Below, piece after piece: positions 861 through 30,781 of a stretch of DNA of 64,000 nt; the stretch's first letter is position 1; each line of letters opens with the position of its first letter. A model generated the notes under the pieces. The model made no database searches and was not told where the DNA came from. It saw nothing but the letters and a program-made list of their open reading frames with translations. The position numbers and the translations under genes were made by a program. Source of the stretch: Octopus bimaculoides (lineage: Eukaryota); contig NC_068983.1 in assembly GCF_001194135.2 (NCBI RefSeq), positions 53,775,666-53,839,665 of the forward strand, written 5' to 3'.

Positions 861-1021
861 CCAGAGTAAGCACATAAATGTGAAACAAGGTGGAAAAATA
901 GTACATACTAGAATACCAGAGGTAGAGTAACATGCTTTATTGAAAAGCACCAAAAATATCACAAAACTGTTACTCAGAGTTTCACATTCCCGTTCGTCAG
1001 ACAGTTTTGCTTTTCAATAAA
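861..1021 (-). mobile_element. Mini Penelope-like terminal-repeat remnant carrying a hammerhead
   Basis: About 160 bp between two (TA)n tracts. Contains the hammerhead at 962-1009 and a 14-bp inverted repeat ctttattgaaaagc/gcttttcaataaag. Confidence 0.6.
962..1009 (-). ncRNA. Type I hammerhead ribozyme (intact motif)
   Basis: Minus strand: caaaactgt-CUGACGA-acg(ggaa)tgt-GAA-ACUC(u)GAGU-A-acagttttg. Helix I is 9 bp, helix II 3 bp with a GNRA loop, helix III near-palindromic, cleavage triplet GUA. Confidence 0.88.
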
Positions 1022-1524
1022 GTATATATATATGTTTGTGTGTGTGTGTGTGTATATATACACACACACACACATACATACTTGTCAGCTTGTCTGTCTT
1101 TGTTATAAAAGAAAAAGATTGCTTTTCTTATGTTGATGAAGTAGAATTTGCTATAAGTTTTCATCTGTGTATGTTCATTTAAATGCAAGAAAACAACAAG
1201 TTACAAGATAAACTGGTAATACTACTCATAAAGAGTTTCTATACAATTTCTTTTGCAAAAGTTGAAAGCAACAAAATCAAAACTGAAAATATGTCAGACT
1301 GCTACAATTTGTTATTTAATGTTAAACCTGCTCTCACATTGAATGGACATATATATAAAGATAATCAAGCTATGACCATCCCATCTTTTTTTTTTTTTTC
1401 AATTATTGATAATGTAGGTGCAGAAGAACTGGTGAGACTATGAAAGCTTGTAGTACTCCATTTCTGAAATAGCAGGATTTATTTTCTCACATACTATATA
1501 GGCCACATACTATATAGGCAACGA

Positions 1525-1885
1525 TCATGTTCGGATGGTGCTTTATACGTACCTCCAGCACAGGAGCCAGCCAGGGGTTAATGGCATCGGTCACAATCGG
1601 TTGGTGCTTTTTATGTGCCACCAGCACAGGAGCCAGTTAGGCACACCTGAAATCAACCATGTTTAGCTGGTGCTTTTTACATGCCACCGGCACGGGAGCC
1701 AGTCAGGCGAGCCTCACACCAACCACGTTTAGATGGTGTTTTTATGTGCCACTGGCACAGGAGCCAGTCAGGGGGCATTGGCCCCAGCTATAATACTGGT
1801 TTTACTTGACTCAACACGTTTTCTCAAGCATATCATATTGTCCGACGCATCAGGGGTATTCTTAACAGAGCCAGACATGCGTGGC
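1525..1885 (-). mobile_element. Family D retroposon with internal 66-bp tandem repeats
   Basis: Four units start ggtg at 1537, 1603, 1669 and 1735, with core gtgccaccggcacaggagccagtcagg. The same units occur inside the copy at 9085-9512. Confidence 0.7.
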
Positions 1886-2037
1886 TAATGGATAATAAAA
1901 CGAATGTCTCTCATTTGCCATGTACATGTGTATATATTTATGTATGTGTATATAAATTTATGTATGTTGTGTATTTATATGCAGATGTATGTATGTGTAT
2001 ATATATATATATATGTATGTATGTGTATATGTTTGCG

Positions 2038-2072
<35 letters not shown>

Positions 2073-2399
2073 GTTTATGTATGTGTATATATATATGTAT
2101 GTATGTGTATATGTATGTGTATATATATATATATGTATGTATGTGTATATGTATGTATATATATATGTATGTGTATATATGTATTTATGTATGTGTATAT
2201 ATATATTTATGTATATGTATATATATATTTATGTAAGTATATGTATATATATATTTATGTATGTGTGCATATATATATGTATGTATCTGTATGTGTATAT
2301 ATGTATATGTATGTGTATATATGTATATGTATATATGTATATACATATATGTATATATGTTTTGTGTATATATGTATGTGTATATATGTATGTGTGCAA

Positions 2400-2880
2400 T
2401 TGATGAAGCACTTGAACAGTTAAAACAGCACAAGAACCGGGCAGCAGATGGAACATTTAACTGTTGATCTAGTATATTCTTCAATTATATATACTTCACG
2501 TTCAAACTGATAATTTTAATGCCCCACAATTGTTTTCATTGCTCTCTGACAAAAGTCAAGACACATACAGTAGATTTTTTGCCAAAATAAATGAATTACT
2601 GCAGAATGAGGGACCTGTTGATATAATTATGGATTTTGAAAAAGCAGCCCATAATGAATTTCTGGGTCGAATTTGGCATGCTGCTTGTTTTATTCAGGAC
2701 CAAATGTGTACAAACATGTTGTGCCAGAAGAACTAAAATGCAGATATCACGAAGATGACAGTTTTAGTCTAAAAATGCAGTGTTTTGTTGCCCTTGTCTT
2801 CCTGCTGGTTGATGATGTTGTAGATGGATAGATGATTTTCCACAGTCAGTTATATCCTATTTTGAAAATAATTATATACC
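2400..2880 (+). pseudogene. Decayed Mutator/MULE transposase fragment
   Basis: ADGTFN...LFSLLSDKSQDTYSRFF...IIMDFEKAAHN...CF..Q...FSLKMQCFVALVFL...YFENNYI, with stops and frameshifts. These are MULE DDE domain motifs. Confidence 0.85.
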
Positions 2881-3935
2881 AAAAGAAGCCCATTGTATGG
2901 GTGTATGTATGTATTTGTCTCTCCCGCCGCACCCCACTGCTCGACAACTGGTGTTGGTGTTTTTATGTCACTGTAACTTAGCACTTCAGCAAAAGAAACC
3001 GATACAATAAGTATCAGGCTCAAAATTAAAAGTATTCGGGTTGATTTATTTAACCAAAAATTCTTCAGGGCAGTGCCCCAGCATGGCTACAGTCTAATGA
3101 CTGAAACAAGTAAAAGGCAAAGAATATGAGGGAATGCTGAAAAGTTCCTGGTTATGGGTAAAAGAAAGGATCAATTGATTATGGCTTTATTCAACATATT
3201 TTCCTTCACTTTTTCTAAGCCCTGTAAAAGAACTTAGAAGTCAAGCCTCCAGCCAGGCCGTTTGCTGTGCCCTTAAAGCTAGGAACTTTTCAACTCCCCC
3301 TTGTAAAGATCTAAGAATTATTATTTTTGATATCCAAATTCTAATGATAGAGCTTTCACTTATCAAGCCCCAACTTCTAGGAAATAAACTCATACATACA
3401 TGCATTCATATATAATGTGTATGCATGATAACTAGAATTCTAGATACATATCTCTTCCATGGAGATGTCAGTTGTAAGGTTTATCTAAAAATGCTGCAAA
3501 ATACCTGTGGTGAAATAGTAATTAATACACAACCTAATAAACACTGTACATAATTTATGAGTCTAGCATTTATGCTGTGTTGCAGATAGGTTTTTCCTTT
3601 TGTTTTCAATATTTAAAAGTCAAAAGCAATTTAACGGTTAAGCTTAGTCTAAGCTGTATATAAAAACAAAGTTTTATCAAGTCTTAATTAATCCAAGATT
3701 GCTTAGCATTGTGTTCAACAAGACGTAAGAGAACAGAATCAATATGATTAATGTTGGAATGAATATGGACCATTATGATAAACATTTAATTTATTTACTG
3801 AGATGTACTTGCATAGCAAGCAACCTGATCTGAGATCATGTGCTGGAACAAAAACAGTTGCAGGGTGGAAGGTGTTTATAAGCCATTTAAGAAACACACA
3901 AAAACTGTTAGATTCACTTCAGCATTTAAATTTAA

Positions 3936-3982
3936 TTTGCCAAAATATTTTCATCGCTTTGAGACCGCGACCTGGTCACTGA
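3936..3982 (-). ncRNA. Hammerhead variant with G3-C8 core
   Basis: Minus strand: tca-GUGACCA-g-gtcgc(ggtctcaaa)gcgat-GAA-AAUAUU-U-tggcaaa. Palindromic helix III; helix I truncated to 3 bp at the palindrome centre. Confidence 0.6.
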
Positions 3983-3994
3983 TGCAGCAAGGAA

Positions 3995-4046
3995 TTTTGT
4001 CAGTAAACAGGTCACGGCCTCAAAGCAATGAAAATATTTTGGCAAA
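3995..4046 (+). ncRNA. Hammerhead variant with G3-C8 core, decayed (G5A, helix II transitions)
   Basis: tttgtca-GUAAACA-g-gtcac(ggcctcaaa)gcaat-GAA-AAUAUU-U-tggcaaa; helix I is 7 bp. Confidence 0.5.
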
Positions 4047-4225
4047 TTAAATTTAAATGTTGAAGTGAATCGTATGGTTTTTGTGTGTTTCTTAAATGGC
4101 GTATAAACACCTTCCATGCTGCAATTGTTTTGATTTAACTTATTCTATGGCATTTATCATTGTTTACTGTTTGCGTTCAGTATTGGCAAAATATCCTACA
4201 CAAAACTAGTAGAAAGAAAATATTT

Positions 4226-4436
4226 TTTCCTACTCTCTGCACAAAGCCCAAAATTTGGTGGGGAGTAGGCCAGTCAATTAGATCAACCCCAGTACACAAC
4301 TGGTACTTAATTTATTGACCCTGAAAGAATGAAAGGCAAAGTCGACCGCAATAGAATTTGAACTCAGAAAGTAAAGACAGATGAAATATTGTTAAGCATT
4401 TCGCCCGGAGTGCTAACATTTCTGCCAGCTCACCAT
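4226..4436 (-). mobile_element. tRNA-type SINE family A (ggcggcgagctggcagaa...)
   Basis: Matches the many copies with gagttcaaatt (B-box-like) and core gactttgcctttcatcctttcggggtcgataaattaagtaccag. Confidence 0.85.
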
Positions 4437-4555
4437 CCTAGTAGAAAGAAAATATTAAGAAAACAAGGATTTCCCAACAATCTGACACAACAATATTCAT
4501 CAGCTTTAGTCAATGTTCTCAACTGGTCAGTCAGGACTTTTATAAAATATTGGCA

Positions 4556-4712
4556 CAAGCATGGCTGTGTGGTTAAGGAGCTTGCTTTGCAACCTCATGG
4601 TTTCAGGTTCAATCCACTGTGTGGCACTTTGGGCCAATGTTTTCTACTATAGCACTGGATCAACATACATTGTGAGTGAATTTGGTAGACAGAAACTGCT
4701 TGGAAGCCCATC

Positions 4713-4771
<59 letters not shown>

Positions 4772-5105
4772 GTTAAAAATCACTTCTTTAACTTTCTAAG
4801 ACATCTCAACGCTTCTAAAAGCAAACTTCATTTGTTTGTTTACATTTGTTGTAATTTGAATTTAATATATATATATATATATATGTATATCTATGCATCT
4901 CTGTGTCTTGTTGTTTGTTTTTATTCCTTCCACAACCACTTGACAACTGGTATTGGTTTGTTTATGTTCCTGTAACTTAGATGTTCAGCAAAAGAAACTG
5001 ATAGATTAAGTCCCAGAATTAAAAATAAGCATTACAAATTGATTAAATGCTTCAGTACAGTGCTCCAGCATAGCCACAACCCAATGACTGAAACATGTGA
5101 AAGGT
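4556..5105 (+). mobile_element. tRNA-type SINE family B with internal microsatellite
   Basis: Head ggctgtgtggttaag...ggttcaatccc, ccttgggcaa core, central (TA)n, tail gctccagcatagccacaacccaatgactgaaac. Confidence 0.85.
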
Positions 5106-5644
5106 AAAAATTTACATTACTACATCACCCAAATAATGAATTATTACTTGATTGTTTGTTTATGACAGACAATATCTATGCTTAAGCCTTTTGTTTATCT
5201 CTTTTTACTCTAATCCAATAAGCTGGAAATGAATACTGTATGGTGAATACATCCAGTTTTCACTCTGCAAAGTATCTTCTTTCATATAATTTCATGAACT
5301 TGCAACGTTAAGTTCATATTTCTTTATAAATAAAGACGATAATAAATGTGCTCACAGCATGCCTTCATTCTGTTTTCAACCAATTATCGATCATTCAAAC
5401 TGAAGAGAACTCAATACGAAGGAATTATTCTATCTCAAATAATAAGATTTGTTCATGACTTGTAATAAGGTGCTCAGCTAACTCAAAAAAAAAAAACGTG
5501 TATACACATGCATGTATTTCATCGTCACACTTCTTTATGCTTGAGAGATGTAGACTCCTTACTAATGCCATATCAAATAACGCGAATAGTTCTCTGAATC
5601 AAAACTTCATTTACTTCTAAGTGTTTACTGGAAACAAAGGAAGA

Positions 5645-5975
5645 CCAATATCTATTCCTACAACTGAAAATGACAACAAGCACTGAAATGGTAATCAATA
5701 AGTACCACCAGCGGTACTGGATTGGCCCCATGTCCAAAGAACAGATAATGAATAACTAATGAAGACCTTCTTTTATTCTCAACTGACAACAGAAAATTGT
5801 CATCAAAGAAAACCACAACTGAGGTTTAGAGATATCTTGAAGTGGAACCTCATACTATTTGGCATTCTCCAGAAAGAGCTCCAAACAGACGTGGAAGATA
5901 GAAAACAATGGAGGAATCACTGTTATTTTGGCTGTGAATTCTTTGAGAGAACTAGAAAACATAGGGGTTGGAAAT
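5645..5975 (+). pseudogene. RTE-clade LINE, 3' fragment
   Basis: MKTFFYSQLTTENCHQRKPQLRFRDILKWNL...EDRKQWR is the RTE post-RT C-terminal pattern. Confidence 0.65.
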
Positions 5976-6313: not shown

Positions 6314-6355
<42 letters not shown>

Positions 6356-6740: not shown

Positions 6741-6783
6741 GCTGCACACATGTTTCTGCCTCAATAAGCATCATCAGCACAGC
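6741..6783 (-). ncRNA. Type I hammerhead motif, probably inactive (H17 = G)
   Basis: Minus strand: gctgtg-CUGAUGA-tgc(ttattgag)gca-GAA-ACAUGU-G-tgcagc. Palindromic helix III; 6-bp helix I with two wobbles. Confidence 0.7.
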
Positions 6784-9084: not shown

Positions 9085-9509
9085 ATCATTGTTTAACGTC
9101 CGCTTTCCATGCTAGCATGGGTTGGACGATTTGACTGAGGACTGGTGAACCAGATGGCTACACCAGACTCCAATCTGATCTGGCAGAGTTTCTACAGCTG
9201 GATGCCCTTCCTAAGCCCAACCACTCTGAGAGTGTAGTGGGTGCTTTCATGTGCCACCGGCACGAGGGCCAGTCAGGTGGTGCTGGCAATGGTCACACTC
9301 AAAATGGTGTATTTTACGTGCCACCTGCACAGGAGCCAGTCCAGCGGTACTGGCAATGAACTTGCTCGAATGACTTTTCATGTTCCACTGGCACAAGTGC
9401 CAGGAATGCGATGCTGCGGCATAAGTGCCAGGAAGGTGACTCTGGTAACGATCACGCTCGAATGGTGGTGCCATCATGATTTCGCTTTCGCTTGCCCCAA
9501 CAGGTCTTC

Positions 9510-9512
<3 letters not shown>
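9085..9512 (-). mobile_element. Family D retroposon, long copy
   Basis: Tail tcatcattgtttaacgtccgctttccatgc on the plus strand, with internal gtgccaccggcac repeats. Confidence 0.8.
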
Positions 9513-9561
<49 letters not shown>

Positions 9562-10037
9562 ACATACACTAGCTGAAATACCCGGCATTGCCTGAGTTAA
9601 TGACTCAGAGAATTAATAGTAACATCACAAAGCTCTTTATTTAACTTATAGTAAATCTCTTCAAAAAAAAAACACTCAGCAAATTCCAGACTAAGAATAC
9701 TTTGTAGACCATTTTCTTTTTTTTTTCTTTTAATATATTTTTGTTTGATATCCAAATCCCAAAGATATACAAGTTCAGTTCTGTGAAAATTTGTGCACAA
9801 GTTCAAATCTCATGAATTCTTTTTCAGTTTTTGCTTAAACATAATGTGTAACCTAACTCAAAATTGTAATCCTAAGTGCTAACATGAAACCCCTAACATC
9901 AAATGCTCACCCTCAATGGAGCAAGGAAGAGTGTAATATGAAACCTCGTGTGTGTTTGTGTGTATGTAGAGAGAGAGAGAAAGAGAGAAAGACAGAGAGG
10001 GTGGAGCAAGAACGAGTGTGATATGAAAGATGTGTCT

Positions 10038-10069: not shown

Positions 10070-10970
10070 GGAGGAGAAAAAAAAAGGAAAAGTTTGGTTT
10101 AATTATAAATATAGTTGTTATAATATTAAGTTATTTCCATTCGTGTGTCTAATGTCATAAATGTATGTGTACACATGTAAATAGATTAAACTTTTCATGT
10201 AAATCATTCTTTTCTTAAAGGTGACAGCGTGTGAAATACATACATGCGTACATACCCACACAAACAATGTTTCCATTAGTCATTATCTGCTGGCTACAAC
10301 TTGGCTTTATAAACTGATTGAAAGCATGCATGTGTGCATCCCTAAATGACAGCTGTATTAATGTTACATTCCACTACCACTCCATATTTGTCTCTTACAC
10401 AACTCCGGTCTCCCCTTTTCTGATATCAGTCACTCTCCCTATCCCACCTCATTTCCTTCACACTAACACTCTTGCAGCCTTCTAATTTTATCCCAAAATA
10501 GCTCATCCTACCATTACAATTTTATAAGTTATATTAGATATATGTAGTTATACACACACATATGTACATGACAAGGTTCCACACAATTTCTGTCTACCAA
10601 ATTCATTCATGACACTCAGGAGCTATAACACAAAACACTTGCCTAAGGTGCCATGTGGTTGTAAAAACCAGACACACATGGTTGCAAAGCAAGCTCATTA
10701 ACCATCACACAGCCATGCACATACCTATATATATATATATATACATATCATCATCATCGTTTAACGTCCGCTTTCCATGCTAGCATGGGTTGGACGATTT
10801 GACTGATCTGGCAGAGTTTCTACAGCTGGATGCCCTTCCTAACGCCAACCACTCAGAGAGTGTAGTGTGTGCTTTTACGTGCCACCGGCACGAAGGCCTG
10901 TCAGGCAGTACTGGCAATGGCCACGCTCAAAATGGTGTATTTTATGTGCCACCTGCACAAGAGCCAGTCC

Positions 10971-11328
10971 NNNNNNNNNNNNNNNNNNNNNNNNNNNNNN
11001 NNNNNNNNNNNNNNNNNNNNNNNNNNNNNNNNNNNNNNNNNNNNNNNNNNNNNNNNNNNNNNNNNNNNNNNNNNNNNNNNNNNNNNNNNNNNNNNNNNNN
11101 NNNNNNNNNNNNNNNNNNNNNNNNNNNNNNNNNNNNNNNNNNNNNNNNNNNNNNNNNNNNNNNNNNNNNNNNNNNNNNNNNNNNNNNNNNNNNNNNNNNN
11201 NNNNNNNNNNNNNNNNNNNNNNNNNNNNNNNNNNNNNNNNNNNNNNNNNNNNNNNNNNNNNNNNNNNNNNNNNNNNNNNNNNNNNNNNNNNNNNNNNNNN
11301 NNNNNNNNNNNNNNNNNNNNNNNNNNNN
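10971..11328. other. Assembly gap
   Basis: Run of N. Other gaps: 12450-12459, 26546-26653, 34049-34694, 44428-44461, 46124-46133, 59938-60027, 62623-62738. Confidence 1.
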
Positions 11329-11564: not shown

Positions 11565-12392
11565 CAAATCTTTTGTCTTACCATCCCTGTTGTATTCCTG
11601 TGAAACTTGGACTTGTTAGGAAGAGCATTTTAAACTGTTAGAACAATTCCACCAAAAATGCCTTCATTGCATTTTTAAAATTAAATGAAGTTCTTTTACT
11701 CCAAACACAGATGTTCTTGCTTCTGCAGGCATCACCTCAATTAAAGCTATGATTTTAAGGAACCAATTGAGAAGGTGTGGCCATATTGTTCGAATGGCAG
11801 ATGAACGCATGCGGAAACAGCTGTTTTATGGTGAGCTTGCAGAGGGGAAACAAATCGACATAAACCTAAAAAATGGTTTAAGGACAGCATAAAGACTACT
11901 ATGAAGTCACTTGGAATGGTTCCAGAAAATATAGAAACCCTTGCTTCGGATCAAGTTGGATGGTAAACAAAGGTGTGAAGTGGAGTGAAAGCATTTGAAG
12001 AGGCCAGGATAATGAAAGTAAGACTCAAAAGAGATCTAAGGAAGAATGTAACGATCGAGAAGGTGAATGACAATGACCTTTTTGAGTGCACAGTCTGTGA
12101 CAGACCATGCCTCTCTTTGGCTGGCCTCAAATCTCATTTGCGAACACTTGGAAAACGAACCTCCACCAACTATTCTGACTATATGTCTGTGCACACCTTT
12201 GGATGCAGTGTATGCCAAAAGGTTTGCAAATCCAACGGAGGCCTCAAAAGACATGTTGAGATCCACAAAGAGCAGAACTTATCTGGAGGTATTGGTGGTC
12301 CAAATCTGAGGTGCAATCTATGCGGGTGTTTTTTCAGAACATTGTTTGGTTGAAAAAGCCACATCAGACGCCATGATGGTGCTAAGGTGTAG
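11565..12392 (+). pseudogene. RTE/BovB-like LINE 3' fragment ending in three C2H2 zinc fingers
   Basis: VLPSLLYSCETWT...LEQFHQKCL...QLRRCGHIVRMADERMRKQLFYGEL (RT thumb and C-terminus). It is followed by CTVCDRPC..SHLRTL, CSVCQKVC..RHVEIH and CNLCGCFF..*KSHIRRH, with several stops. Confidence 0.9.
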
Positions 12393-12459
12393 GTACAGGA
12401 AGTGGTCAAACTCTGTATAAGGAGTAGACAACCACCATATATATTATATNNNNNNNNNN

Positions 12460-13450: not shown

Positions 13451-13619
13451 CAGACCATATAGAGTTGTTTTCCTTCCCACCAGTGATGTAGGTTTTTACT
13501 ATGTTTGTAATTGATGGTGCTGCAGGCTCCAGACTGAAGACAGCTAAAGAAATGTAGTAATCCTATCATTGACACAGAAACTTGAAGTCTTGTATGTGAG
13601 TCTCCATAACTGTATCATC

Positions 13620-13815
13620 CAGTGTATATGTGGCTGACCCCTAAGGGTGGATGTTACTGTTACTTTTAGCCCCAGGAGAACATCTCCTCCAGCTGGCTAT
13701 CGACATACATCTGTGTCCTGTCTGTATTTGCAAAGGGAAGTCATCCTTCCCATCTTGATCTGCGATACATACGGACTCAAGTTTCTGGGTAGTTTCCTGT
13801 CCTCAGCATACTGAC
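13620..13815 (-). mobile_element. Diverged relative of the hammerhead-bearing ~355-bp repeat unit
   Basis: Shares gatgttactgtt..tagc..acatctcctccagctggct..tgtgtc..gtatttgc..gtttctgggtagtt with 14419-15058. Confidence 0.75.
13768..13812 (-). ncRNA. Type I hammerhead motif, helix II decayed
   Basis: Minus strand: gtatg-CUGAGGA-caggaaactaccca-GAA-ACUUGAGU-C-cgtat; cleavage triplet GUC. Confidence 0.65.
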
Positions 13816-14629
13816 TTTTAATGAATCATAGATTACATAGCAAAAACAAAAATACAGTGTTAAAAAAATATCCATCCAAGTGAAAGTTATAAGACAACAA
13901 AACAAAATAAGCAAAACTAATGAAAAAAATTAACTGGAAACTAATATATATAATTAGAGAATAGACATCAATATGTATTCATATTTCTATGCTCCTGTGA
14001 AATGTTTTTGTAAAAATGTTTCATAGGATTGTAACCAAAACATCTTGCATACTATTTCTGGTTATTTTACATTCTTGCAGCGCTGTTTGCAAATATTCAT
14101 ATATCACCTTTCAAATATATTTATTCTTTCCTATTTAAAATAATACAAACTTACCTCACTTTCTTTCCTGGGGTTTCAAGTTTCTTTTCATTGTGATATT
14201 CAGCAGTGTTTGTTATGAATACCCACGGTTAAATGGAGCGTGAGATTATTAATTGTCAAATTGCTGTGGCAATTATTATGCAAATAGGGTGTATGCTTGT
14301 CAGTGTGAAAAGAGTTTCAACGAAAAATTCTATCCAGAACAACAACACAAATTTATGCATACATACCTACATAGAAGATATATACTATATATGCTGATAT
14401 ACATATATATATATGCTATATTAAATTTCTAAGCGAGAGGTAAACAGTAACAGTATGGAATTGTAAAATATATTTGCCAACTAAATGTGGCAGCCCCGTA
14501 GAGGACGATGTTACTGTTGTTATTAGCTCCAGAAAGACATCTCCTCCAGCTGGCTAACAACACACTGTCTGTGTCCCATTAGTATTTGCAAGGAGAGGTT
14601 ATCACTCCCATCTCTAGCCTTACGTGATA

Positions 14630-14674
14630 CGCATGGACCCGGGTTTCTGGGTAGTTACCCATCTTCAGTGTGTG
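14630..14674 (-). ncRNA. Type I hammerhead, unit 1 (core, helix II and helix III intact; helix I mismatched)
   Basis: Minus strand: cacaca-CUGAAGA-tgggt(aact)accca-GAA-ACCCGGGU-C-catgcg. Confidence 0.8.
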
Positions 14675-14982
14675 ATAGTCACCAGCTAGTGATGAAAACT
14701 CATTCCACTCGCAAAATACTATATGCTTTTTCTAGCGACAAATTGTCGCTGATCTTGAAAAAGGAGAAATAATCTATATTAAATCTCTGAGCAAGAGGTA
14801 AACAGTAACAGTACGGAATCGTAAATTGTATTTGCCAACTAAATGTGGCGGTCCCATAGAAGACAATGTTACTGTTGTTTTTAGCTCAAGGAAGACATCT
14901 CCAGCTGGCTGATGACACTGTCTGTGTCTGATTAGTATTTGCGAGGGAAGGTCATCGCTCCCATCTCTAGCCTTATGTGATA

Positions 14983-15027
14983 CACACAGAGCCGGGTTTC
15001 TGGGTAGTTACCCATCTTCAGTGTGTG
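14983..15027 (-). ncRNA. Type I hammerhead, unit 2 (helix I perfect; one helix III substitution)
   Basis: Minus strand: cacaca-CUGAAGA-tgggt(aact)accca-GAA-ACCCGGCU-C-tgtgtg. Confidence 0.8.
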
Positions 15028-15058
15028 ATAGTCACCAGCTAGTGATGAAAACTCATTC

Positions 15059-16838
15059 CGTGGAGGGCATGCCTGAGAGGGCCACCACAAATTGTAGTGG
15101 TCCCAGTACAGTTCTCTGTGGGACTCCGCTGAGAATTGGTGTCTCTTCAGAGTTAGCACCATTGGCTACAGCTGTCTGACTCCTGCCCTTCAGAAAGTCA
15201 TTCAGCCACTCTCCCAGTTTCCCAGTAATACCAAGGTTTTGCAGCTTGTGACGTATCATGCCATGATCAACCTTGTCAAAGGCTTTGGCAAAGTCGATGT
15301 ATATCACGTCAACAGCTGACTGGTTTAGCTATTGTTTCAGAACCCAGTCAAAGTGCTACAGCATCTGTATAAGGCAGCTTATCCCTGGACAGAAGCCATG
15401 TTGTATGTTTGTGAGAAGTTTGTTTTCTTCTAGGAATGTGATCATCCTTTCTCTTACAATGCGTTCCATTGTCTTGCTAACATGTGAGATCAGAGAGGTG
15501 GGCCTGTAGTTTTTAGCATCTGCTCTGCTCCCTCCTTTATGGAAAGGGCATATTATACCCTCTTTTAGCATGTTGGGAAGTTTACCACATGCAAGGAAAC
15601 TCTGCAAGAGCCTTTTTACAAGTGTTTAAGAGAACAGCCAGGAGTCCATCTGGGCCTGTTGCTGAGTTTAATCTCATCTCATCAATAGCCAATATTACAT
15701 CCTCTTCTGTTATGTTGATGTAATCAATGGTTGCCTATTTTCCAAATAGATTTGTTACATTGAAAAACTCTTCAGGCTTGTTTATTTGCATATTTTCCAG
15801 TGGAGAAGTAAAATCACTTCAGAATTGTTTATTTTGTGCTTCACTTATCTTCCCCAGGTCTGCAGTTAGTGAGCCACTTTTACCAAATAGTGGTCCTATG
15901 TTATAGTGTACTGAGGCAAACTCCTTTGTCAATGTTTAGAAACTTTAGGATTTCTTTTATATTTTTGACTGCCCAGATTTCTCTTTCTTCTCTTCCTTTT
16001 TCATGGGAGATTTTGAGATTATTTTCAATCTCAAAGAGTTCTTCTGTCAGGTGGAAATTCAGTCATTGAGATGTTTGTTTAAACAATTCGAGATCTTTAT
16101 TCTCTGCTGCATGAGTATTCTCCTGTGTCGAGGAATGATGTTTTTGTGTGTATTGGCTCTCTTCTCTGGGACATATTTAATGCATATGGCTCGCATTATT
16201 GACATGAATTTATTGAGTTTCATATCTATGTCTTGCATAGAGAAGCTTTTACGCCAGTCCTGTTGGAGTATCTGTTTTTCCAGTGACTTCCAGTCAGCCT
16301 CACAGAAATTTAGGCTGGATAGGGTTTGAGTGCCATCTGTGCAGAGTTTATCTTCAGTTAATTCCAAGCCATATATTGTCAGTTCTATCATGTTATAGTC
16401 TGAGAATATTGTCTGTGATATATTTACATTGTGGATGATTTCCACATTGTTTGTAAAACAGAAGTCCAGGATATTTTTGTGCCTGGTTGGAGAGAGTATG
16501 ATCTGCTCCATGAATAGCATTTTCATAAGATCAAATAAAGACTCTGCTTGATTTCGCTCTTTGTGTGTCATTCCTAGGGTTATGTTGCCCTCAAGCCACC
16601 TGATGTTGGGGACTTGAAGTCACCCATCAGGAGTATAGTAGTATGTTGATCCAATTGTGTTAGTACTTCCTTTATCGCACTGAGGCTTTCCTCAAATTTT
16701 CCATCATGATTTGAGGCAACAGGTGGGTGATATAGTGTGCATATCACTATATCAAGTTGCTTTAGATGAACTACGAGTGAGTCACACACCAAGTTTGAGT
16801 TTGGAAGCAGGGTTAATGGTGTGACATCTTCGCAGATA
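15059..16838 (-). pseudogene. CR1/L2-group LINE ORF2 fragment (AP endonuclease plus N-terminal RT), truncated at both ends
   Basis: ICTLYHPP..LLMGDF; SPTRHKNILDFCFTN..SDYN; HKGGSRADAKNYRPTSLISHVSK; YIDFAKAFDKVDHG; SGVPQRTVLGPLQF. Frameshifted. Confidence 0.92.
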
Positions 16839-16842
16839 TATA

Positions 16843-18435
16843 TTAGGTGGAGCGAAAAATGCAACTTTCAAAATTGGTAACCAAGAATCGATATTTTGAT
16901 GCAAATTAAGGTTAAAAGAAAGGTGTATAAAGAACTTTGTGGTTAAGTATATTTTTCAGGCTCTGCAATGCAATTTTTCTAAATTGCTATTTTTGGTCGA
17001 ATTTTGGCTTTCATGGATTATAAGTCGTAACGATTAATATTTCTACGTAGCTGAAGGCAAAACATTAAATATATTATCCATAAAAGGTTGCATACCAAGT
17101 TTCAATATAAATGACTAATATCTTGAGGTTCTGCATTGACAACAAAGAGAATGGGAGTGTGAACTTCTCTCCAGTGCCGCTGCAATGGTCGTTGTGTGTG
17201 GACGTATGTCATACATGTGTGAAGTTTTCTGCTTTGCACCTTGACTTTAGGCCATTGTATTAAAATTAACGATCGTGTTAAATTTAGTGTTCTTTACATT
17301 TAGTGATGACTCACAAGCAAATAACGTGTCATGATATTGAATGCCCGGCATTTGGTACTGCATGTGATTTTAGCGAGCGAGTTTTGCCAACTTACAAGGA
17401 CGTACTAAAATGTGTTTTATTTGAATGAGAAAAAGAAAAGAATGTAGTTAAGAAAGATCCTTCAATTAAGCAAATTGTCAAGATTGTAGCAGAAAAGATA
17501 ATTCTTCTTTGGCAAAAGGTATTCTTCCTTTGTGTTACAATTGAGTCAATTAAACCGAAAATCTTAAACCAAGAATTACTAAAATCTGTGAAAAATAGAA
17601 AAAAATGTGCCATCGTTTCAAACAAAGGGTAATGTGTTTAAAAAACAATGCAACAAAAGATTTATTTGACATTTCTTGTTGCAAGTGCAACTCCTTTAAA
17701 AGCTGCAGTTGTAGTGGAGACAAAAATGTAGCAGAGAGAGAAGAAAATTTTTTACAGGATCAACAGACAAATTGAAAAAATGATCATTGGCAGAATAGAT
17801 CAAGCGGTATCTGAAGAGAGCATTAAGAGGTTGATTAGAGAGAATCGGCCAGATTACAGTCACCCTTCTATGTCAGCAAAGGTAAATTTAAGATTTTCAG
17901 TTTAACTGACTCAGTCATAGCACAAGGGATGGATGCCTTTTTCCAAAGAAGAATTATCTTTTCTGCTACAATCTTGACAATTTGTTTAATTTATTTTAAT
18001 ATATGTGTAATCTAGACCTCATGTAACACATATATTTGGAAGCCATCTCATATGCAACACATATATAAAGAAAACAAAGTTGCAAAGTCTATTTATGTCA
18101 CATAATTTCGAAATTTTAAGTATGTTGCGGAGCCTGAAGATATAAATTTTAGAGCTTGAGATTTTAACACGCTTATTTTTCAAAGATTTTGCAAAAGAAA
18201 ATTAATTCGTAATAATGAATGTAAAAATAAAATGAGGAATGGCAAACGAGTTATAAATTGATTTTTTTTTGCTCATTATTCAAAATTTCAAGTTGGCTGC
18301 GGAGCCTGAAGATGTAGATTTAAGAACTTCAGATTTTAACACAATTGTTTTTTTAAGATTTCGCAATAGAAAATAGATTCTTAAAACCATATTTTGAAAA
18401 TCTGTGTAAAATGTACATTTTTTGCTCCACCCTAA
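16843..18435 (+). mobile_element. Internally deleted TIR DNA transposon, tentatively Sola-like
   Basis: TIRs TTAGG(G)TGGAGC(G)AAAAATG and catttttgctccaccctaa, flanked by TATA. The internal remnant at about 17382-17870 reads LPTYKDVLKCVL...LFDISCCKCNSFKSCSCSGDKNVAEREENFLQDQQT..MIIGRID. The superfamily call is from recalled motif similarity only. Confidence 0.6.
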
Positions 18436-19996: not shown

Positions 19997-20215
19997 ATTC
20001 TTTTCTACTCTAGGCACAAGGCCCGAAATGTTTGGAGAGGGGGCCCAGTCAATTAGATCGATCCCAGTATGCGACTGATACTTGATTTATTGAGCCAGGC
20101 AGGATGAAAGGCAAAGTCAACCTCAGCAGAATTTGAACTCAGAACGTAAAGACAGACAAAATACTGCTAAGCATTTCGCCAGGCATGCTAATGTTTCTGC
20201 CAGCTCGCCGCCTTA
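19997..20215 (-). mobile_element. SINE family A
   Basis: Full head gccagctcgccgcc on the plus strand, plus core. Confidence 0.85.
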
Positions 20216-23084: not shown

Positions 23085-23650
23085 TAATTCCGCCGGGGTC
23101 GATAAATTAAGTACCAGTTGCATACTGGGTTGATCCAATCGACTGGCCCCCTCCCCAAATATTTCGGTCTTTGTGCCTAGATTAGAAAAGAATATTTAAG
23201 CAGTAAGCTGACAGAAACGTTAGCACACCAGGCCAAATGCTTAGCAGTATTTTTTCTGTCTTTATATTCTGAGTTCAAATTTTGCCGAGGTTGACTTTGC
23301 CTTTCATCCTTTTGGAGTTGATAAATTAAGTACCAGTTGCATACTGAGGTTGATCTTATTGACTGGCCCCCTCCCCCAAAATTTCAGGCCTTGTGCCTAG
23401 AGTAGAAAAGACTATTTCAGACACATAAGATGCAGTGAGCTGCCAGAATCCTTAGCATGCTGGGCAAAATGCAAAGCAGTATTTCACCTATCTTTACATT
23501 TTGAGTTCAAATTGCACTAAAGTTGACTTTGCCCTTCCTCCTTTGGGGGGAGGGGGGGTCATTGATATAAGTACCAGTTAAGCATTGGGATTGATGTAAT
23601 CGACTTCACCCTTCTGCCAAAACTGGTGACCTTGTGCCAAAATTTAGAAT
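23085..23650 (+). mobile_element. Head-to-tail cluster of about three SINE family A copies
   Basis: Repeated core gataaattaagtaccagttgcatact and tail ttgtgcctagagtagaaaag. Confidence 0.8.
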
Positions 23651-26237: not shown

Positions 26238-26356
26238 GTTTACGGCCATATCACATTGAAAACACCGGTTCTCGTCCGATAACCGAAGTTAAGCAACATC
26301 GAGCCTAGTTAGTACTTAGATGGGTGACCGCTTGGGAAACCTAGGTGCTGTAAACG
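26238..26356 (+). rRNA. Full-length 5S rRNA-like copy, probably retroposed
   Basis: GTTTACGGCCATATCAC...CCGAAGTTAAGCAAC...AGTACTTAGATGGGTGACCG...GCTGTAAAC. Helix I pairs fully (GTTTACGGC/GCTGTAAAC) and boxes A and C are present, but helix II has two mismatches. Confidence 0.9.
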
Positions 26357-26398
26357 TCTTTCTATCCTTTTAGCCCCCTTTGGGCAATAAAGAAATAA
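26238..26398 (+). mobile_element. 5S-headed retroposon (5S plus SINE-A-type tail) with a 13-bp TSD
   Basis: Tail tttagccccctttgggcaataaagaaataa matches the family A tail at 47640-47669. Flanks ttatcgtttttac (26225-26237) and ttgtcatttttac (26399-26411) match at 11/13. Confidence 0.8.
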
Positions 26399-26682
26399 TT
26401 GTCATTTTTACTTTTGTGTTTGTCTTCAAATATAAAGTTAATTCATCCATTCTTATTTATTCTTAAATACCTCATTAGAGAAACGAAATAGTTATTCAGT
26501 AAGAGTCACTTTTCTCCATTGATTATATATATATATATACATATANNNNNNNNNNNNNNNNNNNNNNNNNNNNNNNNNNNNNNNNNNNNNNNNNNNNNNN
26601 NNNNNNNNNNNNNNNNNNNNNNNNNNNNNNNNNNNNNNNNNNNNNNNNNNNNNACACATGCATACATACATGCATGCATATG

Positions 26683-27240
26683 CACAACAGACCTGTTATA
26701 ATGATTTGGGATAGAGAAGAGAACCTGTGCACCCTTGTGGAAATTAGCTGCCCAGTGGATGTTAACATAAAGCTGAAGATCAGTGAAAAAGAGAACGCCA
26801 TGCTGAACTATTGAGAAATTTGCAGTTACTCTATCAAGATTACAAGTTTAGGTTTATACCTGTAATTAATGGGGCCCTGGGATATGTAACACACTGCCTA
26901 AATACCAATCTTGAGAAATTTGGCTTCTCAAAACCAGAAAGGAGAAAGCTAATTCGAAGGCTACAGATCCAATCCATCGCTAGAACTGTAAAAATCTGTA
27001 AAACTTTCCAGAAGTTTATCATTCAAATATGTATGAGTATGTCTAGATATGTAACTATATGCATGAGAATACATACATAAAACATACAAATCTGCACGTA
27101 TATACGTAATACATACATGCATACGTGTGAATCAGTATATACAGACTGCTTACAGTACATTCTGTCTCACCTAGGGATTCGTCTGGGAATCCTTGAGAAC
27201 TGAATGCCTGGAAGGTACATGAAAAACATTTATACATACA
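26683..27240 (+). mobile_element. R4/Dong-like non-LTR retrotransposon 3' end (REL endonuclease)
   Basis: HNRPDLL*WDREENLCTLVEISCPVDVNI...RNLQLLYQDYKFRFIPVINGALG (PD-(D/E)xK), then a 3' UTR. Confidence 0.85.
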
Positions 27241-27579
27241 CATAGATAGATTCAAACGGCAGCTGCACAGAAACTCAAATACAACCAACCATAGTCAACT
27301 AACACAGCATTAATTCCTCATACTAAATATAAAAATATGAAATCCAAATGAACTTAAAAGAAATAAACCTGCACCTGCACGCCCAGTTAGAAAACCTTCC
27401 TGAACCACAAGTCACCCTATGATCACTCTATAATTTCTGCAGTTCCCTTAATGTTTTGTTAATTCAAAATTTCCCTGCCGCGATAAAGCTACTGATCAAT
27501 AAGAAGTACTGAACTGTTAAATTTAACTTATCATAGTTAATACAATATTGAGTTCTGTTTTATATGTACGTATGTGTTA

Positions 27580-27810
27580 TTTCTTTACTATCCACAAGGG
27601 GCTACACACAGAGGGGACAAACAAGGACAGACAAACGGATTAAGTCGATTATACCGACCCCAGTGCGTAACTGGTACTTATTTAATCGACCCCGAAAGGA
27701 TGAAAGGCAAAGTCGACCTCGGCGGAATTTGAACTCAGAACGTAGCGGCAGACGAAATACCGCTAAGCATTTCGCCCGGCGTGCTAACGTTTCTGCCAGC
27801 TCGCCGCCTT
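27580..27810 (-). mobile_element. Young full-length SINE family A
   Basis: Head, core and tail ...tagccccttgtggatagtaaagaaataa, all CpG-rich and intact. Confidence 0.9.
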
Positions 27811-29394
27811 GTATGTATGTATGTGTGTTTGTATGTATGCGCGCGCAAACACAGACACGTGTTGCACGTGTTCTCGCACTCTTATAGACATACTCGTACA
27901 TGTGCAGTGTGTGTACATCTACACATGCATACATACATCGTTAGAGAGAGAGAGAGTGATGCAAATATATTGTTATATATGAGTTTATACACACACACAT
28001 AGGTAGCTAGCTAGCTAGATAGATAGATGTGTGTATATATGTATGTATTATGTATACATGCGTGTGTGTGTGTGTGTGTATTATATATGTGTGTGTATAA
28101 GCACACACCACATACATATCTACTTTTCTGTTCTCATAGACTCATACACATTCCCAAACATGAACACACAATAGCGTGTTTAGCGTATATGCATTAAAAA
28201 ATCTATCCCCGCCTTCTAAAAGTCTAACCATAAATCAGTAGATTTATTCTGCAGAAAAATTTTAAAATCAAGTTAGACTTGCACAACCAATACGAAGATA
28301 TTCCAAGCATCCTGTAAAAGAACTAAGCCTAGCTACTAATAGGGAATCCATAACACACGACTGCTAAATATATCGTGTAAATATATTGCTAAAGCTATAG
28401 TACACGAGGCTGATACATAAATGCTATATGTGCATGACAGAGGGAAAGCTAAAACAAACACTTCTCTTATCATTTGTTAAGATTGAATTATGTAACATCT
28501 GAAAATGAAAAGAAAATGCTTCCAAATATTACATCGAATGAAGATTACAGAAAGATCAACACCTAACAAGAGCAGAAGAAAAGGGCGTAATTGTTGCATG
28601 GTAGGGAAAGATTCATACTTAAAGATGGGGTGACACTGAGGTAGGTAGGTAGATAGATATTGAGTGGATGGATGGGGAGAGAGAAAAAGAAGGGGATTGG
28701 TAGATAGTATATACAAATAATATACATTATATTTTGTGTGTGTGTTAAATTGTAGTGAGTACGCAAAACAGCGAGAATCAAAACATTGATGAATATGCAT
28801 TGATTAACATGTTCTGGCTGATGTGAGTGTGCATATTTACAGTTGATTATGTGTGAATAAATATACACATGAATGTCGTATGTATGTATGTGTTTATATC
28901 ACGAATATTACTATACTAAAGCACATGGTAGTCTACGATGTATTTTTCGCTGATACAGGTTTGTAAAACAATTGATAACAACCCTTTCAACTACAGGCAC
29001 AAGGCCTGAAATTTTGGAGGAAAGTGCTAATCGATTACATCGACCCCAGTGTTCAAGTCATACTGATTTTATCAACCCTGAATACAGAGTTGACCTCAAG
29101 GGAATTTGAACTTGAAACGTAAAGACGGATGAAATGCTGCTAAGCATTTTGCTCGGCATGCTAACAGTTCTGCCAGATTAATGTTGAACTTGCAGTAAAG
29201 AGTGCTTCGGTGCACTGCGTCTTGTCGGGAAAGGATAAAAGAGGGAAGAGAAAACGGCAAGAGAAAAGTCAAGTAAAGAAAGCACCAAAAGTACATGCAC
29301 TGTTTACAGAATAAAACACACGGAAACAGAAAAGAGGACCGTAGCAGAGCCATAAAAACAAAAGAAAGGGTTCATAGGTACATCAGTCGTGTTA

Positions 29395-29650
29395 GTGAAT
29401 TTCGGGAAACATGGTGTTTTTTGAAGGATGCAGTGTCTTAACAATAACTGATGTGGATAGTTTGTTTCGGGCTACGACAATCCTGAGAGTGAAAAAACTG
29501 TTTTCGAACGTCATAGGAGCTTCGCAGTTTTTCGATTTTAAAAGAAGCCGGCTGTAGAGGAGTGTGTAATTGAGAAAAATCAACAAACTTATACATCTGG
29601 TTAGCTTTGATTTTATCCACCTCCAATCGATCGACAGGGAAAGTCGATTA
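29395..29650 (-). pseudogene. CR1-type LINE, extreme 3' fragment
   Basis: FKIEKLRSSYDVRKQFFTLRIVVARNKL, the CR1 ..R..FF..R.V..WN.L motif. Confidence 0.6.
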
Positions 29651-29887
29651 TTTTGCGAAATTCACAGTCAGAACAACGAGATAAGGAAACGAAAACCTCC
29701 GACCCACTTCGGTCGGCTTTGAATTTTTGGGAGCAAATCCGAGTTATCCACAATAGTTTTATTAAGATCTCTGTAATTTATCTATCTATCTATCTATCTA
29801 TCTGTCTATCTACATGTATGTATTATATATGTCTATTCATACATAAATACATACATACAAACGTAAGTACATTCATACGTTCGTAAA

Positions 29888-29934
<47 letters not shown>

Positions 29935-30073
29935 ATATATGTATGTATGTATATATATGAATGTATGTATATATGTATGATTGTATGTATATATATATAT
30001 GAATGTGTGTATGTGTATGTATGTATATATATGTATGTGTATATATATATGAATGTATGTATGTATATATACA

Positions 30074-30107
<34 letters not shown>

Positions 30108-30145
30108 TGTATGTATGTGTGTGTATATATATATATATGAATGCT

Positions 30146-30191
<46 letters not shown>

Positions 30192-30568
30192 TGCGTGTGT
30201 ATATATATATATATATATATAAATGTATGCATGCATGCACGTATGTATGTACAATATAAGCGTTCAGTTGTCCATGTGTCAGGAAAAAAAGCACTCTCTA
30301 AACGAAATTTTGAGCAGTTATATTTTATGTATTCGAGTATTATATCGTTGGTTATGGCATATAACTGGTGAGAAAGTTACCATTAGTTTCACGTCTCCTA
30401 ATTCACTTAGCAATATTGACAACTCAGACCTGCTGGTCAGAAGCATGTAGCCTCTTTATTTTAGAAGTAAATACTAATAGAGAGTGAAACCATTGGTAAC
30501 TTCCTAATCAATTATATCCCATAACCAAAGATACCCTACTCGACTATATATATATATATATATATATA

Positions 30569-30781
30569 GTAAATAAAATAAAAACGTAGAACAAACACAA
30601 AATAACAACAACGTGAGGACGTGGTACATGTGAAGTATTAGCTGACGCTCAGGGAAGGAAAGAAAGGTAGTTTAACGTTTCGAGCAAAGCTCTTCTTCAG
30701 AAACAGAGGAAAATCCAATAGGAAAAGAAGACGGAGAAAAAGAAATCGCCAACGATTCACATGAGGTTACATTTTGAAATG
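30569..30781 (-). mobile_element. Penelope-like terminal-repeat remnant between (TA)n and (GATA)n
   Basis: Contains the minimal hammerhead at 30670-30704; ends in a T-rich tail at the (TA)n tract. Confidence 0.6.
30670..30704 (-). ncRNA. Minimal type I hammerhead ribozyme (intact motif)
   Basis: Minus strand: gttt-CUGAAGA-a-gagc(ttt)gctc-GAA-ACGU-U-aaac. Four-nt palindromic helix III; triplet GUU. Confidence 0.78.

Follow-up and report, generated by a model that had tools for sequence, protein, structure and literature searches.

Type I hammerhead ribozymes with a short palindromic helix III occur in the pseudo-LTRs (pLTRs) of Penelope-like elements (PLEs) and in metazoan non-LTR retrozymes, and they cleave as dimers (PMC4209133, PMC7229834, PMC6765202). 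The retrozymes carry the hammerhead in head-to-tail repeats of ~150-450 bp, from dimers to multimers; they are non-coding, have a GC content <45-50%, and are without LTR, PBS, or PPT (PMC7229834). Further retrozyme criteria are the loop 1/loop 2 tertiary contacts of canonical hammerheads and the presence of unit-length linear and circular RNA, and the satellite hammerheads of newt and axolotl, counted among retrozymes, act as dimers (PMC7229834). The minimal hammerhead of PLEs has an absent or minimal helix III (palindromic 15.2-16.2/loop 3), an unpaired nucleotide between A9 and 10.1, a helix I of 4-5 bp, and a helix II of 6-8 bp, and it sits in pLTRs flanking an ORF for reverse transcriptase (RT) and GIY-YIG (PMC4209133). 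The pair G10.1-C11.1, which closes helix II, is conserved in hammerheads (PMC4209133). Cephalopod genomes are already known to hold Rfam-detectable hammerheads as well as PLEs (PMC6962438, PMC8557442).

We analyzed a 64,000-nt stretch of the Octopus bimaculoides genome (NC_068983.1), here called the window. Its first 31 kb probably contains fossil hammerhead retroelements, short and non-coding, that belong to four unrelated families of the Penelope-derived/metazoan non-LTR retrozyme kind. The features are as follows, with the evidence for each in parentheses.

862-1019, minus strand: F1 element, ~158 nt of unique sequence with s1 at its 5' end (sequence context)
961-1010, minus strand: s1, hammerhead motif of family F1 (strict and relaxed descriptors passed)
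6741-6783, minus strand: s4, hammerhead-like motif of family F2 (mode B descriptor)
13608-13809, minus strand: copy C of family F3, partial and diverged (blastn, repeat search, nhmmer E = 3.8e-22)
13768-13812, minus strand: s5, diverged F3 hammerhead (core and helix inspection)
14408-15059, minus strand: F3 tandem array, 1.8 units (repeat search, blastn, nhmmer)
14630-14674, minus strand: s6, F3 hammerhead of unit B (core and helix inspection)
14983-15027, minus strand: s7, F3 hammerhead of unit A (descriptors A and C, fold)
15035-16867, minus strand: decayed APE-type (jockey-like) LINE (translation, Pfam, homologues, tblastn end points)
30670-30704, minus strand: s8, min-HHR-type motif of family F4 (mode C descriptor, features compared with PMC4209133)

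Hammerhead motifs and their families

An earlier note on this DNA listed eight hammerhead motifs, and we find the full core at six of them (s1 and s4 to s8), all on the minus strand. In these sites a CUGANGA...GAAA core is accompanied by a short palindromic helix III, and helices I and II can pair. Each keeps 11 of the 11 invariant core positions (C3-U4-G5-A6-N7-G8-A9 ... G12-A13-A14-A15.1). The palindrome of helix III is ACUCUGAGU in s1, ACAUGU in s4, ACUUGAGU in s5, ACCCGGGU and ACCCGGCU in s6 and s7, and ACGU in s8. The note had thus named the kind of motif correctly. The six sites fall into four families of short repeats that are unrelated to one another: F1 (s1), F2 (s4), F3 (s5 to s7), and F4 (s8).

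The two remaining sites, 3936-3982 and 3995-4046, have no CUGANGA (≤1 mismatch) 5' of their GAAA; together they make up the arms of a single inverted repeat (3851-4131, 281 bp, 85% complementary). With these two removed, the family count is four and not about five, as had been proposed. The description of the set as repeatedly amplified applies to F3, with three copies; F1, F2, and F4 are each present once in the 64 kb.

The s1 motif reads GCAAAACUGU CUGACGA ACGGGAAUGU GAA ACUCUGAGU A ACAGUUUUGU. It has a helix I of 10 bp (1010-1001 with 970-961), the core CUGACGA at 1000-994, a 3-bp helix II with A10.1-U11.1 and a GGAA loop (993-984), GAA at 983-981, helix III at 980-972, and A17 at 971. The F1 element lies between (TA)n at 757-861 and (TA)5(TG/CA)n at 1020-1082, and the microsatellites themselves set its boundaries. 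It is predicted to fold at -34.4 kcal/mol (z = -2.3), and its downstream part is complementary to the core of the hammerhead. No second F1 copy was found in the window by blastn or nhmmer.

The s4 motif (GCUGUG CUGAUGA UGCUUAUUGAGGCA GAA ACAUGU G UGCAGC) has a perfect CUGAUGA core, a helix I of 6 bp including two G-U pairs, a helix II of 4 bp, and ACAUGU as helix III; blastn and nhmmer found no further F2 copy in the window. The s8 motif (GUUU CUGAAGA A GAGCUUUGCUC GAA ACGU U AAAC) has a helix I of 4 bp, an unpaired A after A9, G10.1-C11.1, a 4-bp helix II with a UUU loop, a helix III reduced to ACGU, and U17 at 30674. Folding does not predict that its helix I forms alone, and the window contains no further F4 copy.

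Most copies are decayed and carry a disabling defect. The helices around the core have their open ends in helix I, a type I topology, and s1 (961-1010) and s7 (14983-15027) alone are intact by a rule of ≤1 mismatch per helix. The nucleotide at the cleavage position is A17 in s1, C17 in s5, s6, and s7, U17 in s8, and G17 in s4. The rule of A15.1-U16.1 followed by H17 therefore holds everywhere except at s4, which is predicted to be uncleavable because of its G at position 17 (6747). Helix I is broken in s6, helix II is broken in s5, and helix I is only 4 bp in s8. The pair closing helix II is A-U in F1, U-A in F2 and F3, and G-C only in F4, after the unpaired A; the canonical G10.1-C11.1 is thus missing from three of the four families (F1, F2, and F3). 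Hammerhead mutagenesis indicates that A-U or U-A in place of G10.1-C11.1 should lower activity.

The occurrence of the motifs is not random. A descriptor allowing ≤1 mismatch per helix found s1 and s7, compared with 0.005-0.013 loci per dinucleotide shuffle; s1 passes in both strict and relaxed form and s7 passes descriptors A and C. Permitting G17 (mode B) added s4 with 0.013 loci expected, and the min-HHR-type descriptor (mode C) found s8 with 0.007 expected. The union descriptor gave 4 loci in the window and none when the sequence was reversed. There are 10 bare CUGANGA-N8-30-GAAA pairs, compared with 3.2 ± 1.6. The shuffle check proposed with the earlier note thus came out in its favor: the motif density (2-4 loci) is not matched in dinucleotide-shuffled sequence. 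The p-values are optimistic because the descriptors were written after the sites were seen, but the excess is still large. The Rfam hammerhead models reported none of the six sites at the gathering score. At E≤10, no hammerhead family was among the matches listed for a 32-kb search, and none appeared for slices of 1.5 kb, 121 nt, 81 nt, and 76 nt.

The F3 array and the adjoining LINE

The F3 array consists of unit A (14707-15059, 353 nt) and ~0.82 of a unit B (14408/14416-14706), which are 88-92% identical. The repeat period is 353-358 nt, and 353 nt separate the predicted cleavage sites. An (AT)n tract (14403-14414) lies 2 nt from the end of the array; 5.3% of positions are this close to a microsatellite tract. 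The 353-nt RNA between the two sites folds stably (-108.7 kcal/mol, z = -4.93) with its ends paired. GC content is 0.41-0.43 for the F3 units and 0.35-0.46 across the hammerhead units. Six-frame fragments overlapping these units contain no Pfam domain.

The s7 motif of unit A reads CACACA CUGAAGA UGGGUAACUACCCA GAA ACCCGGCU C UGUGUG. It has a helix II of 5 bp with U10.1-A11.1, a helix III with one mismatch, and C17 at 14989. Its helix I has 6 bp but runs on beyond a bulge and can be extended to ~12 bp with two bulges, 15040-15037 pairing with 14979-14976 as the distal part. The s6 motif of unit B has a helix II of 5 bp, a perfect palindrome as helix III, and C17 at 14636, with three of six pairs left in helix I; cofolding predicts two helix II hairpins joined by an 8-bp intermolecular helix III. 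In s5 the core is CUGAGGA, C17 is at 13774, and three changes in the 5' strand break helix II. Copy C, which includes s5, is ~70-74% identical to F3 unit positions 36-236; it begins at the 5' end of the hammerhead and is without positions 1-35.

Across the three F3 copies the core is invariant and the helices are variable. Between copy C and units A and B, three helix pairs changed on both sides with pairing kept and 84% of cells are paired; for three sequences this is not significant, as 134 of 500 shuffles equal it. No more copies of any family were found in the window and the collections searched.

The LINE beside the array has the same orientation and amounts to the 5' two-thirds of the element. 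It encodes an endonuclease at ~16867-16062 and an RT at ~15734-15035 (Pfam Exo_endo_phos_2 and RVT_1), the latter with 77% identity to its best homologue, Octopus bimaculoides XP_014783059.1. The element is 3'-truncated within the RT, ahead of the YxDD box; the break coincides exactly with the start of the F3 array, and tblastn alignments of RT relatives end at 15035-15068. Its 3' half was sought downstream and not found. Among the 300 longest six-frame fragments of the window, Pfam gives no GIY-YIG domain, and RVT_1 only in this APE-type LINE, which upholds the earlier statement that the window has no Penelope RT or GIY-YIG ORF. ARAGORN found no tRNA-like or Pol III promoter part.

Origin of the hammerhead elements

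Several observations support fossil retroelements. F2 and F3 match the published architecture, with a helix I of 6 bp, a helix II of 4-5 bp, and a helix III whose 1-2-bp stem carries a palindromic loop. The F3 array lies beside (AT)n and PLEs favor (TA)n (PMC8557442), and the GC content of the F3 units falls within the retrozyme range (PMC7229834). In a live copy, read-through transcription would come first. Two hammerheads, from tandem units or from two transcripts, would then pair through the palindromic helix III to form an active dimer, and the RNA would be circularized by a host RtcB-type ligase. A reverse transcriptase supplied in trans would copy the circle more than once round, and the multimeric cDNA would be inserted, often at (TA)n microsatellites. 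We infer cleavage, dimer action, circularization, and the identity of the RT in this scheme. The hammerhead loci of this window have probably lost their activity, since only s1 and s7 are intact, s1, s4, and s8 have no nearby partner, and s6, the partner of s7, has lost helix I. With F1, F2, and F4 in single copy and no further copies in the window and the collections searched, amplification and mobility are putative.

The motifs could instead be solo or truncated pLTR leftovers of autonomous PLEs, in which the hammerhead served processing of the PLE transcript and the ORFs were deleted or lie outside the window. Type I hammerheads whose helix III is short and palindromic are a constant feature of PLE pLTRs (PMC6765202, PMC4209133), PLEs make partial tandems in addition to preferring (TA)n targets (PMC8557442), and s8 shows specific min-HHR traits. 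A 2026 preprint places retrozymes as the sister group of pLTRs, which makes it difficult to tell them apart. We nevertheless consider pLTR leftovers unlikely, given the absence of GIY-YIG and of RVT_1 outside the APE-type LINE in the 300 fragments, an s1 element of just ~158 nt, and a 353-nt F3 period that suits retrozyme units (150-450 bp) and not the ~3 kb spacing of a pLTR-ORF-pLTR arrangement. It is far less credible that the motifs do not descend from ribozymes and represent chance matches, or else plain hairpins and inverted repeats, of DNA rich in AT and microsatellites. Rfam's silence on all sites, the plain palindrome at 3936-3982/3995-4046, descriptors tuned after the fact, and the minimal s8, with a helix I that folding does not predict, point that way; the excess over shuffles, the empty reversed control, the 11 invariant positions at six sites, and the F3 copies that keep the core while their helices vary all argue against it.

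For F3, the pair s6/s7 might have arisen when a 353-nt segment, made of the truncated LINE end and one F3 insertion, was duplicated locally in tandem, without rolling-circle retrotransposition; part of the hammerhead would then perhaps be LINE RT coding sequence just past the YxDD box. The unit starts at 15059, yet the tblastn alignments of some RT relatives reach 15035, and a DNA alignment with a related LINE gene reaches 14995, through the core. Copy C starts at the hammerhead, and the QKPED codons of the related LINE have GAAAC followed directly by CUGAAGAUG. This extension of the LINE is weak, with an unanchored score of 21 against 20.6 ± 3.0 by chance and anchored p-values of ~0.04 and ~0.10, and the alignment to the closest relative (P0001) stops at 15065. 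Copy C bears this hammerhead too, with putatively compensatory changes and without LINE sequence ahead of it, and 15040-15037 has a pairing partner as distal helix I. We therefore regard such an origin as quite improbable, although LINE flank that was duplicated as well may account for the first 25-35 nt of the F3 unit, in which case the tandem would have arisen by local duplication and not as a rolling-circle product. The fusion could also be a template switch, in which the LINE RT starts on circular or multimeric hammerhead RNA and jumps to the LINE mRNA; we give this very little weight. If true, it would be direct evidence that LINEs, besides PLEs, mobilize metazoan retrozymes. A more radical variant has the F3 hammerhead evolve out of LINE RT coding sequence. 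The LINE-retrozyme junction bears on which enzyme mobilizes animal retrozymes, a question that a single locus cannot settle.

Comparison with described elements

F3 resembles the metazoan non-LTR retrozymes as a non-coding tandem unit of retrozyme length and GC content with strongly structured RNA. It differs from retrozymes in having just 1.8 units and no long arrays, in U10.1-A11.1 instead of G-C, and in being missed by the Rfam model Hammerhead_1. Head-to-tail repeats are found in F3 alone, whereas F1, F2, and F4 are single copies.

The schistosome Sm-alpha and Sj-alpha are SINE-like elements with hammerheads that are canonical and Rfam-detectable. The octopus elements resemble them as short non-coding dispersed or tandem elements with a type I hammerhead, but are without the tRNA-like/Pol III promoter part and without a Rfam match. 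The type I topology and very short palindromic helix III, which implies dimer action, are shared with the minimal hammerheads of PLEs (PMC4209133, and Lunse et al. 2017, cited in PMC6765202). Also shared are a high diversity in sequence among the families of one genome and the nearby (TA)n. The window differs in having no RT/GIY-YIG ORF or recognizable pLTR, and a helix II of 3-5 bp compared with 6-8 bp. F1 to F3 have neither the unpaired nucleotide nor G10.1-C11.1; the minimal PLE traits appear only in s8 (unpaired nucleotide, 4-bp helix I), though its helix II is 4 bp.

Among animal retroelements, hammerhead repeats form an established but under-annotated class, and small circular RNAs arise from them naturally. 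The present finding holds but is an ordinary one, and knowledge of the class is unchanged. Several unrelated hammerhead families in this window escape Rfam models and ORF-based annotation entirely, which is of use for repeat annotation of cephalopod genomes, famed for RNA-level novelty, and for the choice of circRNA candidates. The local density of hammerhead-bearing repeats is roughly one per 5-8 kb. Assembly gaps at 10971-11328, 12450-12459, and 26546-26653 each lie within a microsatellite and at least 1.3 kb from every motif; their continuity is irrelevant to each motif and to the 353-nt spacing of s6 and s7, and matters only for the overall density per kb.

Minus-strand motifs with type I topology

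At all eight sites that an earlier note had described as hammerheads, the plus strand reads TTTC...TCAnCAG, so any hammerhead must lie on the minus strand. Six of the eight have type I topology: CUGANGA, a stem-loop, GAAA, a short palindrome, one nucleotide, and the complement of the strand preceding the core. The helix III palindrome starts with A and ends with U in these six.

Hammerhead-like motifs of families F1 (s1), F2 (s4), F3 (s5, s6 and s7) and F4 (s8); position 17 is the cleavage site
961-1010, minus strand: s1; helix I of 10 bp, CUGACGA, helix II of 3 bp, helix III ACUCUGAGU, A17
6741-6783, minus strand: s4; perfect CUGAUGA, helix I of 6 bp, helix II of 4 bp, helix III ACAUGU, G17
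13768-13812, minus strand: s5; F3 sequence copy, helix II lost
14630-14674, minus strand: s6; F3 copy, helix III a perfect palindrome ACCCGGGU, helix I pairs 3 of 6
14983-15027, minus strand: s7; F3 copy, complete except for one helix III mismatch
30670-30704, minus strand: s8; minimal, with helix I of 4 bp, an extra A after A9, helix II of 4 bp, and helix III reduced to ACGU

G at position 17, as in s4, is the sole base after which a hammerhead cannot cleave. The finding holds for six of the eight sites, and the copies here are mostly dead. The other two (3936-3982 and 3995-4046) contain no CUGANGA even with one mismatch, and permuted arrangements were also rejected; both belong to one 281-bp inverted repeat (3851-4131), in which each is an arm. 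With these palindrome arms removed we count four families, where about five had been proposed. The arms of the inverted repeat are 85% complementary and meet near 3990, and its outer part (3858-3900) partly matches 33085-33128. The repeat may be of foldback or MITE-like type.

The motifs exceed chance expectation. We used an explicit descriptor with at most one mismatch per helix and took dinucleotide-preserving shuffles of the window as background. This descriptor matches s1 and s7, with 0.005-0.013 loci expected per shuffle. Permitting G17 adds s4 (0.013 expected), and a descriptor modeled on the published minimal hammerhead matches s8 (0.007 expected). The union descriptor finds four loci in the real sequence versus none when that sequence is reversed without complementing. 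There are 10 bare core pairs versus 3.2 +/- 1.6, and the four beyond the six motifs lack helices. The exact probabilities are optimistic because the descriptors were fitted once the sites had been seen; post hoc fitting does not account for the two-orders-of-magnitude excess. Motif density in dinucleotide-shuffled sequence, a control that the earlier note had proposed, is therefore not similar to that of the window.

Rfam hammerhead models were not among the matches listed for any of the six motifs, with either the gathering score or E<=10 as cutoff, in searches of 32 kb, of 1.5 kb, and of three slices of 76-121 nt. The cmscan output otherwise held microsatellite ‘miRNA’ noise and one 5S rRNA. 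In three of the four families helix II is closed by A-U or U-A, not by G10.1-C11.1, and hammerhead mutagenesis indicates that replacing this pair should reduce activity. The pair is listed as highly conserved in the 2014 Penelope paper (PMC4209133), and its absence likely contributes to the Rfam silence. Given the lack of an Rfam match and the A-U or U-A closing pair, we describe the motifs only as core-complete and hammerhead-like, with putative catalysis.

All six motifs lie on the minus strand within the first 31 kb, and an adjacent LINE is also on the minus strand. The shared strand is not significant (about 1 in 8 with four independent insertions). The common orientation could be that of a host transcription unit.

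The F3 tandem array and the neighboring LINE

Family F3 and the LINE next to it
13608-13809, minus strand: copy C (with s5), a partial third copy, 70-74% identical, starting at unit position 36
14408/14416-14706, minus strand: unit B (with s6), head-to-tail with unit A and 88-92% identical
14707-15059, minus strand: unit A (with s7), 353 nt
About 16867-16062 (endonuclease) and about 15734-15035 (RT), minus strand: decayed APE-type LINE (jockey-like)

In units A and B, cleavage is predicted to follow the C residues at 14989 and 14636, respectively, a spacing of exactly 353 nt. The intervening RNA has a folding energy of -108.7 kcal/mol versus -81.3 +/- 5.6 in shuffles (z = -4.9), and its ends are predicted to pair with each other. 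The GC content of F3 is 0.41-0.43. Metazoan non-LTR retrozymes, which are non-coding retroelements, carry type I hammerheads in low-GC tandem units of 150-450 bp (PMC7229834); F3 matches this description in its type I hammerhead and 353-nt low-GC tandem unit. The earlier note had named the right kind of element. F3 helix III, a two-pair stem with a palindromic tetraloop, is like that of amphibian elements, which are reported to need dimers (PMC7229834, PMC4209133). The predicted cofold of s6 has two helix II hairpins linked by an 8-bp intermolecular helix III. The invariant core positions are kept in all three copies, and three helix pairs are altered on both sides yet still paired. These double changes are equaled by 134 of 500 shuffles, and with three sequences the covariation is not significant. 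Several of the differences in helix I (CG to TG or CA) resemble CpG decay, consistent with the CpG depletion of the window.

The closest relative of the LINE RT is Octopus bimaculoides XP_014783059.1 (77% identity); this single transposon protein points to a probable octopod source for the DNA. Among the 300 longest six-frame fragments of the window, Pfam finds RVT_1 only in this APE-type LINE and no GIY-YIG, which bears out the earlier claim that no Penelope ORF is evident. The F3 array start (15059) coincides with the end of LINE RT homology (15035-15068, depending on the relative), and the 3' half of the RT is absent downstream. The LINE (15035-16867, minus strand), truncated inside the RT, is joined in the same orientation to the hammerhead array (14408-15059, minus strand).

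When the LINE is aligned as DNA with L001, a gene of a related LINE, the alignment continues through the hammerhead core to 14995. Unanchored, this extension is no better than chance; anchored, it has p ~0.04 when counted from where the repeat begins and ~0.10 for the stretch across the hammerhead. With these weak scores, we set the junction at 15059-15035 and do not regard it as proven that the motif derives from a LINE; support for homology between the hammerhead and the RT coding sequence of LINEs is weak. Copy C starts at the hammerhead 5' end (unit position 36), and the 35 nt that precede this position in the unit can be read in two ways. They could be the distal part of helix I in a 353-nt circle, or they could be co-duplicated LINE flank, which would make the tandem a local duplication. 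The junction itself, a single locus, may be a template-switch product of a LINE reverse transcriptase, as such an event would be expected to leave a LINE truncated at its 3' end and joined head-to-tail to a retrozyme array. It may instead have formed by insertion followed by deletion. Reviews describe the mobilizing enzyme of animal retrozymes as not known and Penelope-like elements as favored by co-occurrence (PMC7761336; 2026 preprint).

Single-copy families and published relatives

F1, F2, and F4 have one copy each in the window. Searching each element against the window with nhmmer gave no further copies of any family, and even with one mismatch permitted in the core, no decayed partner motif was detected close to s1, s4, or s8. 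In this arrangement, dimers of F1, F2, and F4 would form between separate transcripts only. The F1 unit is ~158 nt and is bounded by (TA)n and (TA)5(TG)n; just 2 nt separate the end of the F3 array from (AT)n, and only 5.3% of positions are that near a microsatellite tract. (TA)n is the preferred target reported for Penelope-like elements (PMC8557442). The microsatellite proximity of F1 and F3 fits such targeting, a suggestive but weak argument because the F1 boundaries are themselves set by microsatellites. No tRNA-derived SINE features were found. The F3 and F1 core patterns had no matches in metagenome and viral collections, and a protein search for other copies gave no homologues of a spurious ORF that spans an F3 unit.

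Hammerheads have been known in animal tandem repeats since 1987. Minimal hammerheads acting as dimers have been known in Penelope pseudo-LTRs since 2014 (PMC4209133), and non-LTR retrozymes, including one from a mollusc, since 2020 (PMC7229834). For the giant squid, the genome paper reports 235 matches to Rfam Hammerhead_1 (PMC6962438), and Octopus Penelope-like elements are already catalogued (PMC8557442). We found no published account of F1-F4 or of octopus retrozymes in open-access text. F1-F4 are further families of an already known class of hammerhead-bearing elements.

Assembly gaps and other repeats

The window is eukaryotic in character: its GC content is 0.36 and its CpG observed/expected ratio 0.68, it is very rich in microsatellites, and it contains a 5S rRNA match as well as a TTAGGG-type repeat. 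Three assembly gaps, each bordered by microsatellites, fall within the span of the motifs (10971-11328, 12450-12459, and 26546-26653). The closest motif is 1.3 kb from any of them and none crosses a gap; the 353-nt spacing of s6 and s7, the sole mechanism-relevant distance, lies inside one uninterrupted block. The gaps thus affect only motif density per kb.

The 5S rRNA match (26238-26356, plus strand; 104 bits, E = 1e-21) is full-length, eukaryotic, and AT-shifted relative to the consensus, and 190 nt separate it from the gap at 26546. Candidate identities are a true gene, a pseudogene, and the head of a 5S-derived SINE. At 33995-34048, the very end of a contig, (CCCTAA)n runs directly into (TTAGGG)n (‘...ccctaaccctagggttagggttag’), followed by a 646-N gap (34049-34694). 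All six motifs are on the near side of this head-to-head telomere-repeat junction. The junction may mark an interstitial telomeric site or a scaffold join between unrelated contigs, or it may be a fold-back artefact. We looked for a hammerhead core within 1 kb of this repeat, as in endonuclease-deficient Penelope-like elements, and found none.

An abundant dispersed repeat of ~215 bp, probably a SINE, occurs on both strands at 4218-4434 and at least 15 other places (for example 19997-20209, 23203-23417, 42192-42399, and 47225-47435), with 72-84% identity between copies. Another short repeat, at 31060-31104, is found again at 33462, 36873, 47080, 51964, and 44509. The open frame at 11979-12350 (plus strand) matches C2H2 zinc fingers several times (Pfam, lowest E 6e-7) and may be a ZNF gene exon or part of a transposon. 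Elsewhere in the window there are weak MULE-transposase and Tc3 HTH fragments and a second LINE tail, with zf-RVT at about 51164-51664 and an RT fragment at 46593-46923. A 66-nt unit (TGGTGCTTTTTATGTGCCACCGGCACAGGAGCCAGTCAGGC...) is repeated in tandem 2.6 times at 1602-1772, and related sequence occurs at 9241-9576 and at 10790-10970, the latter adjoining the first gap.
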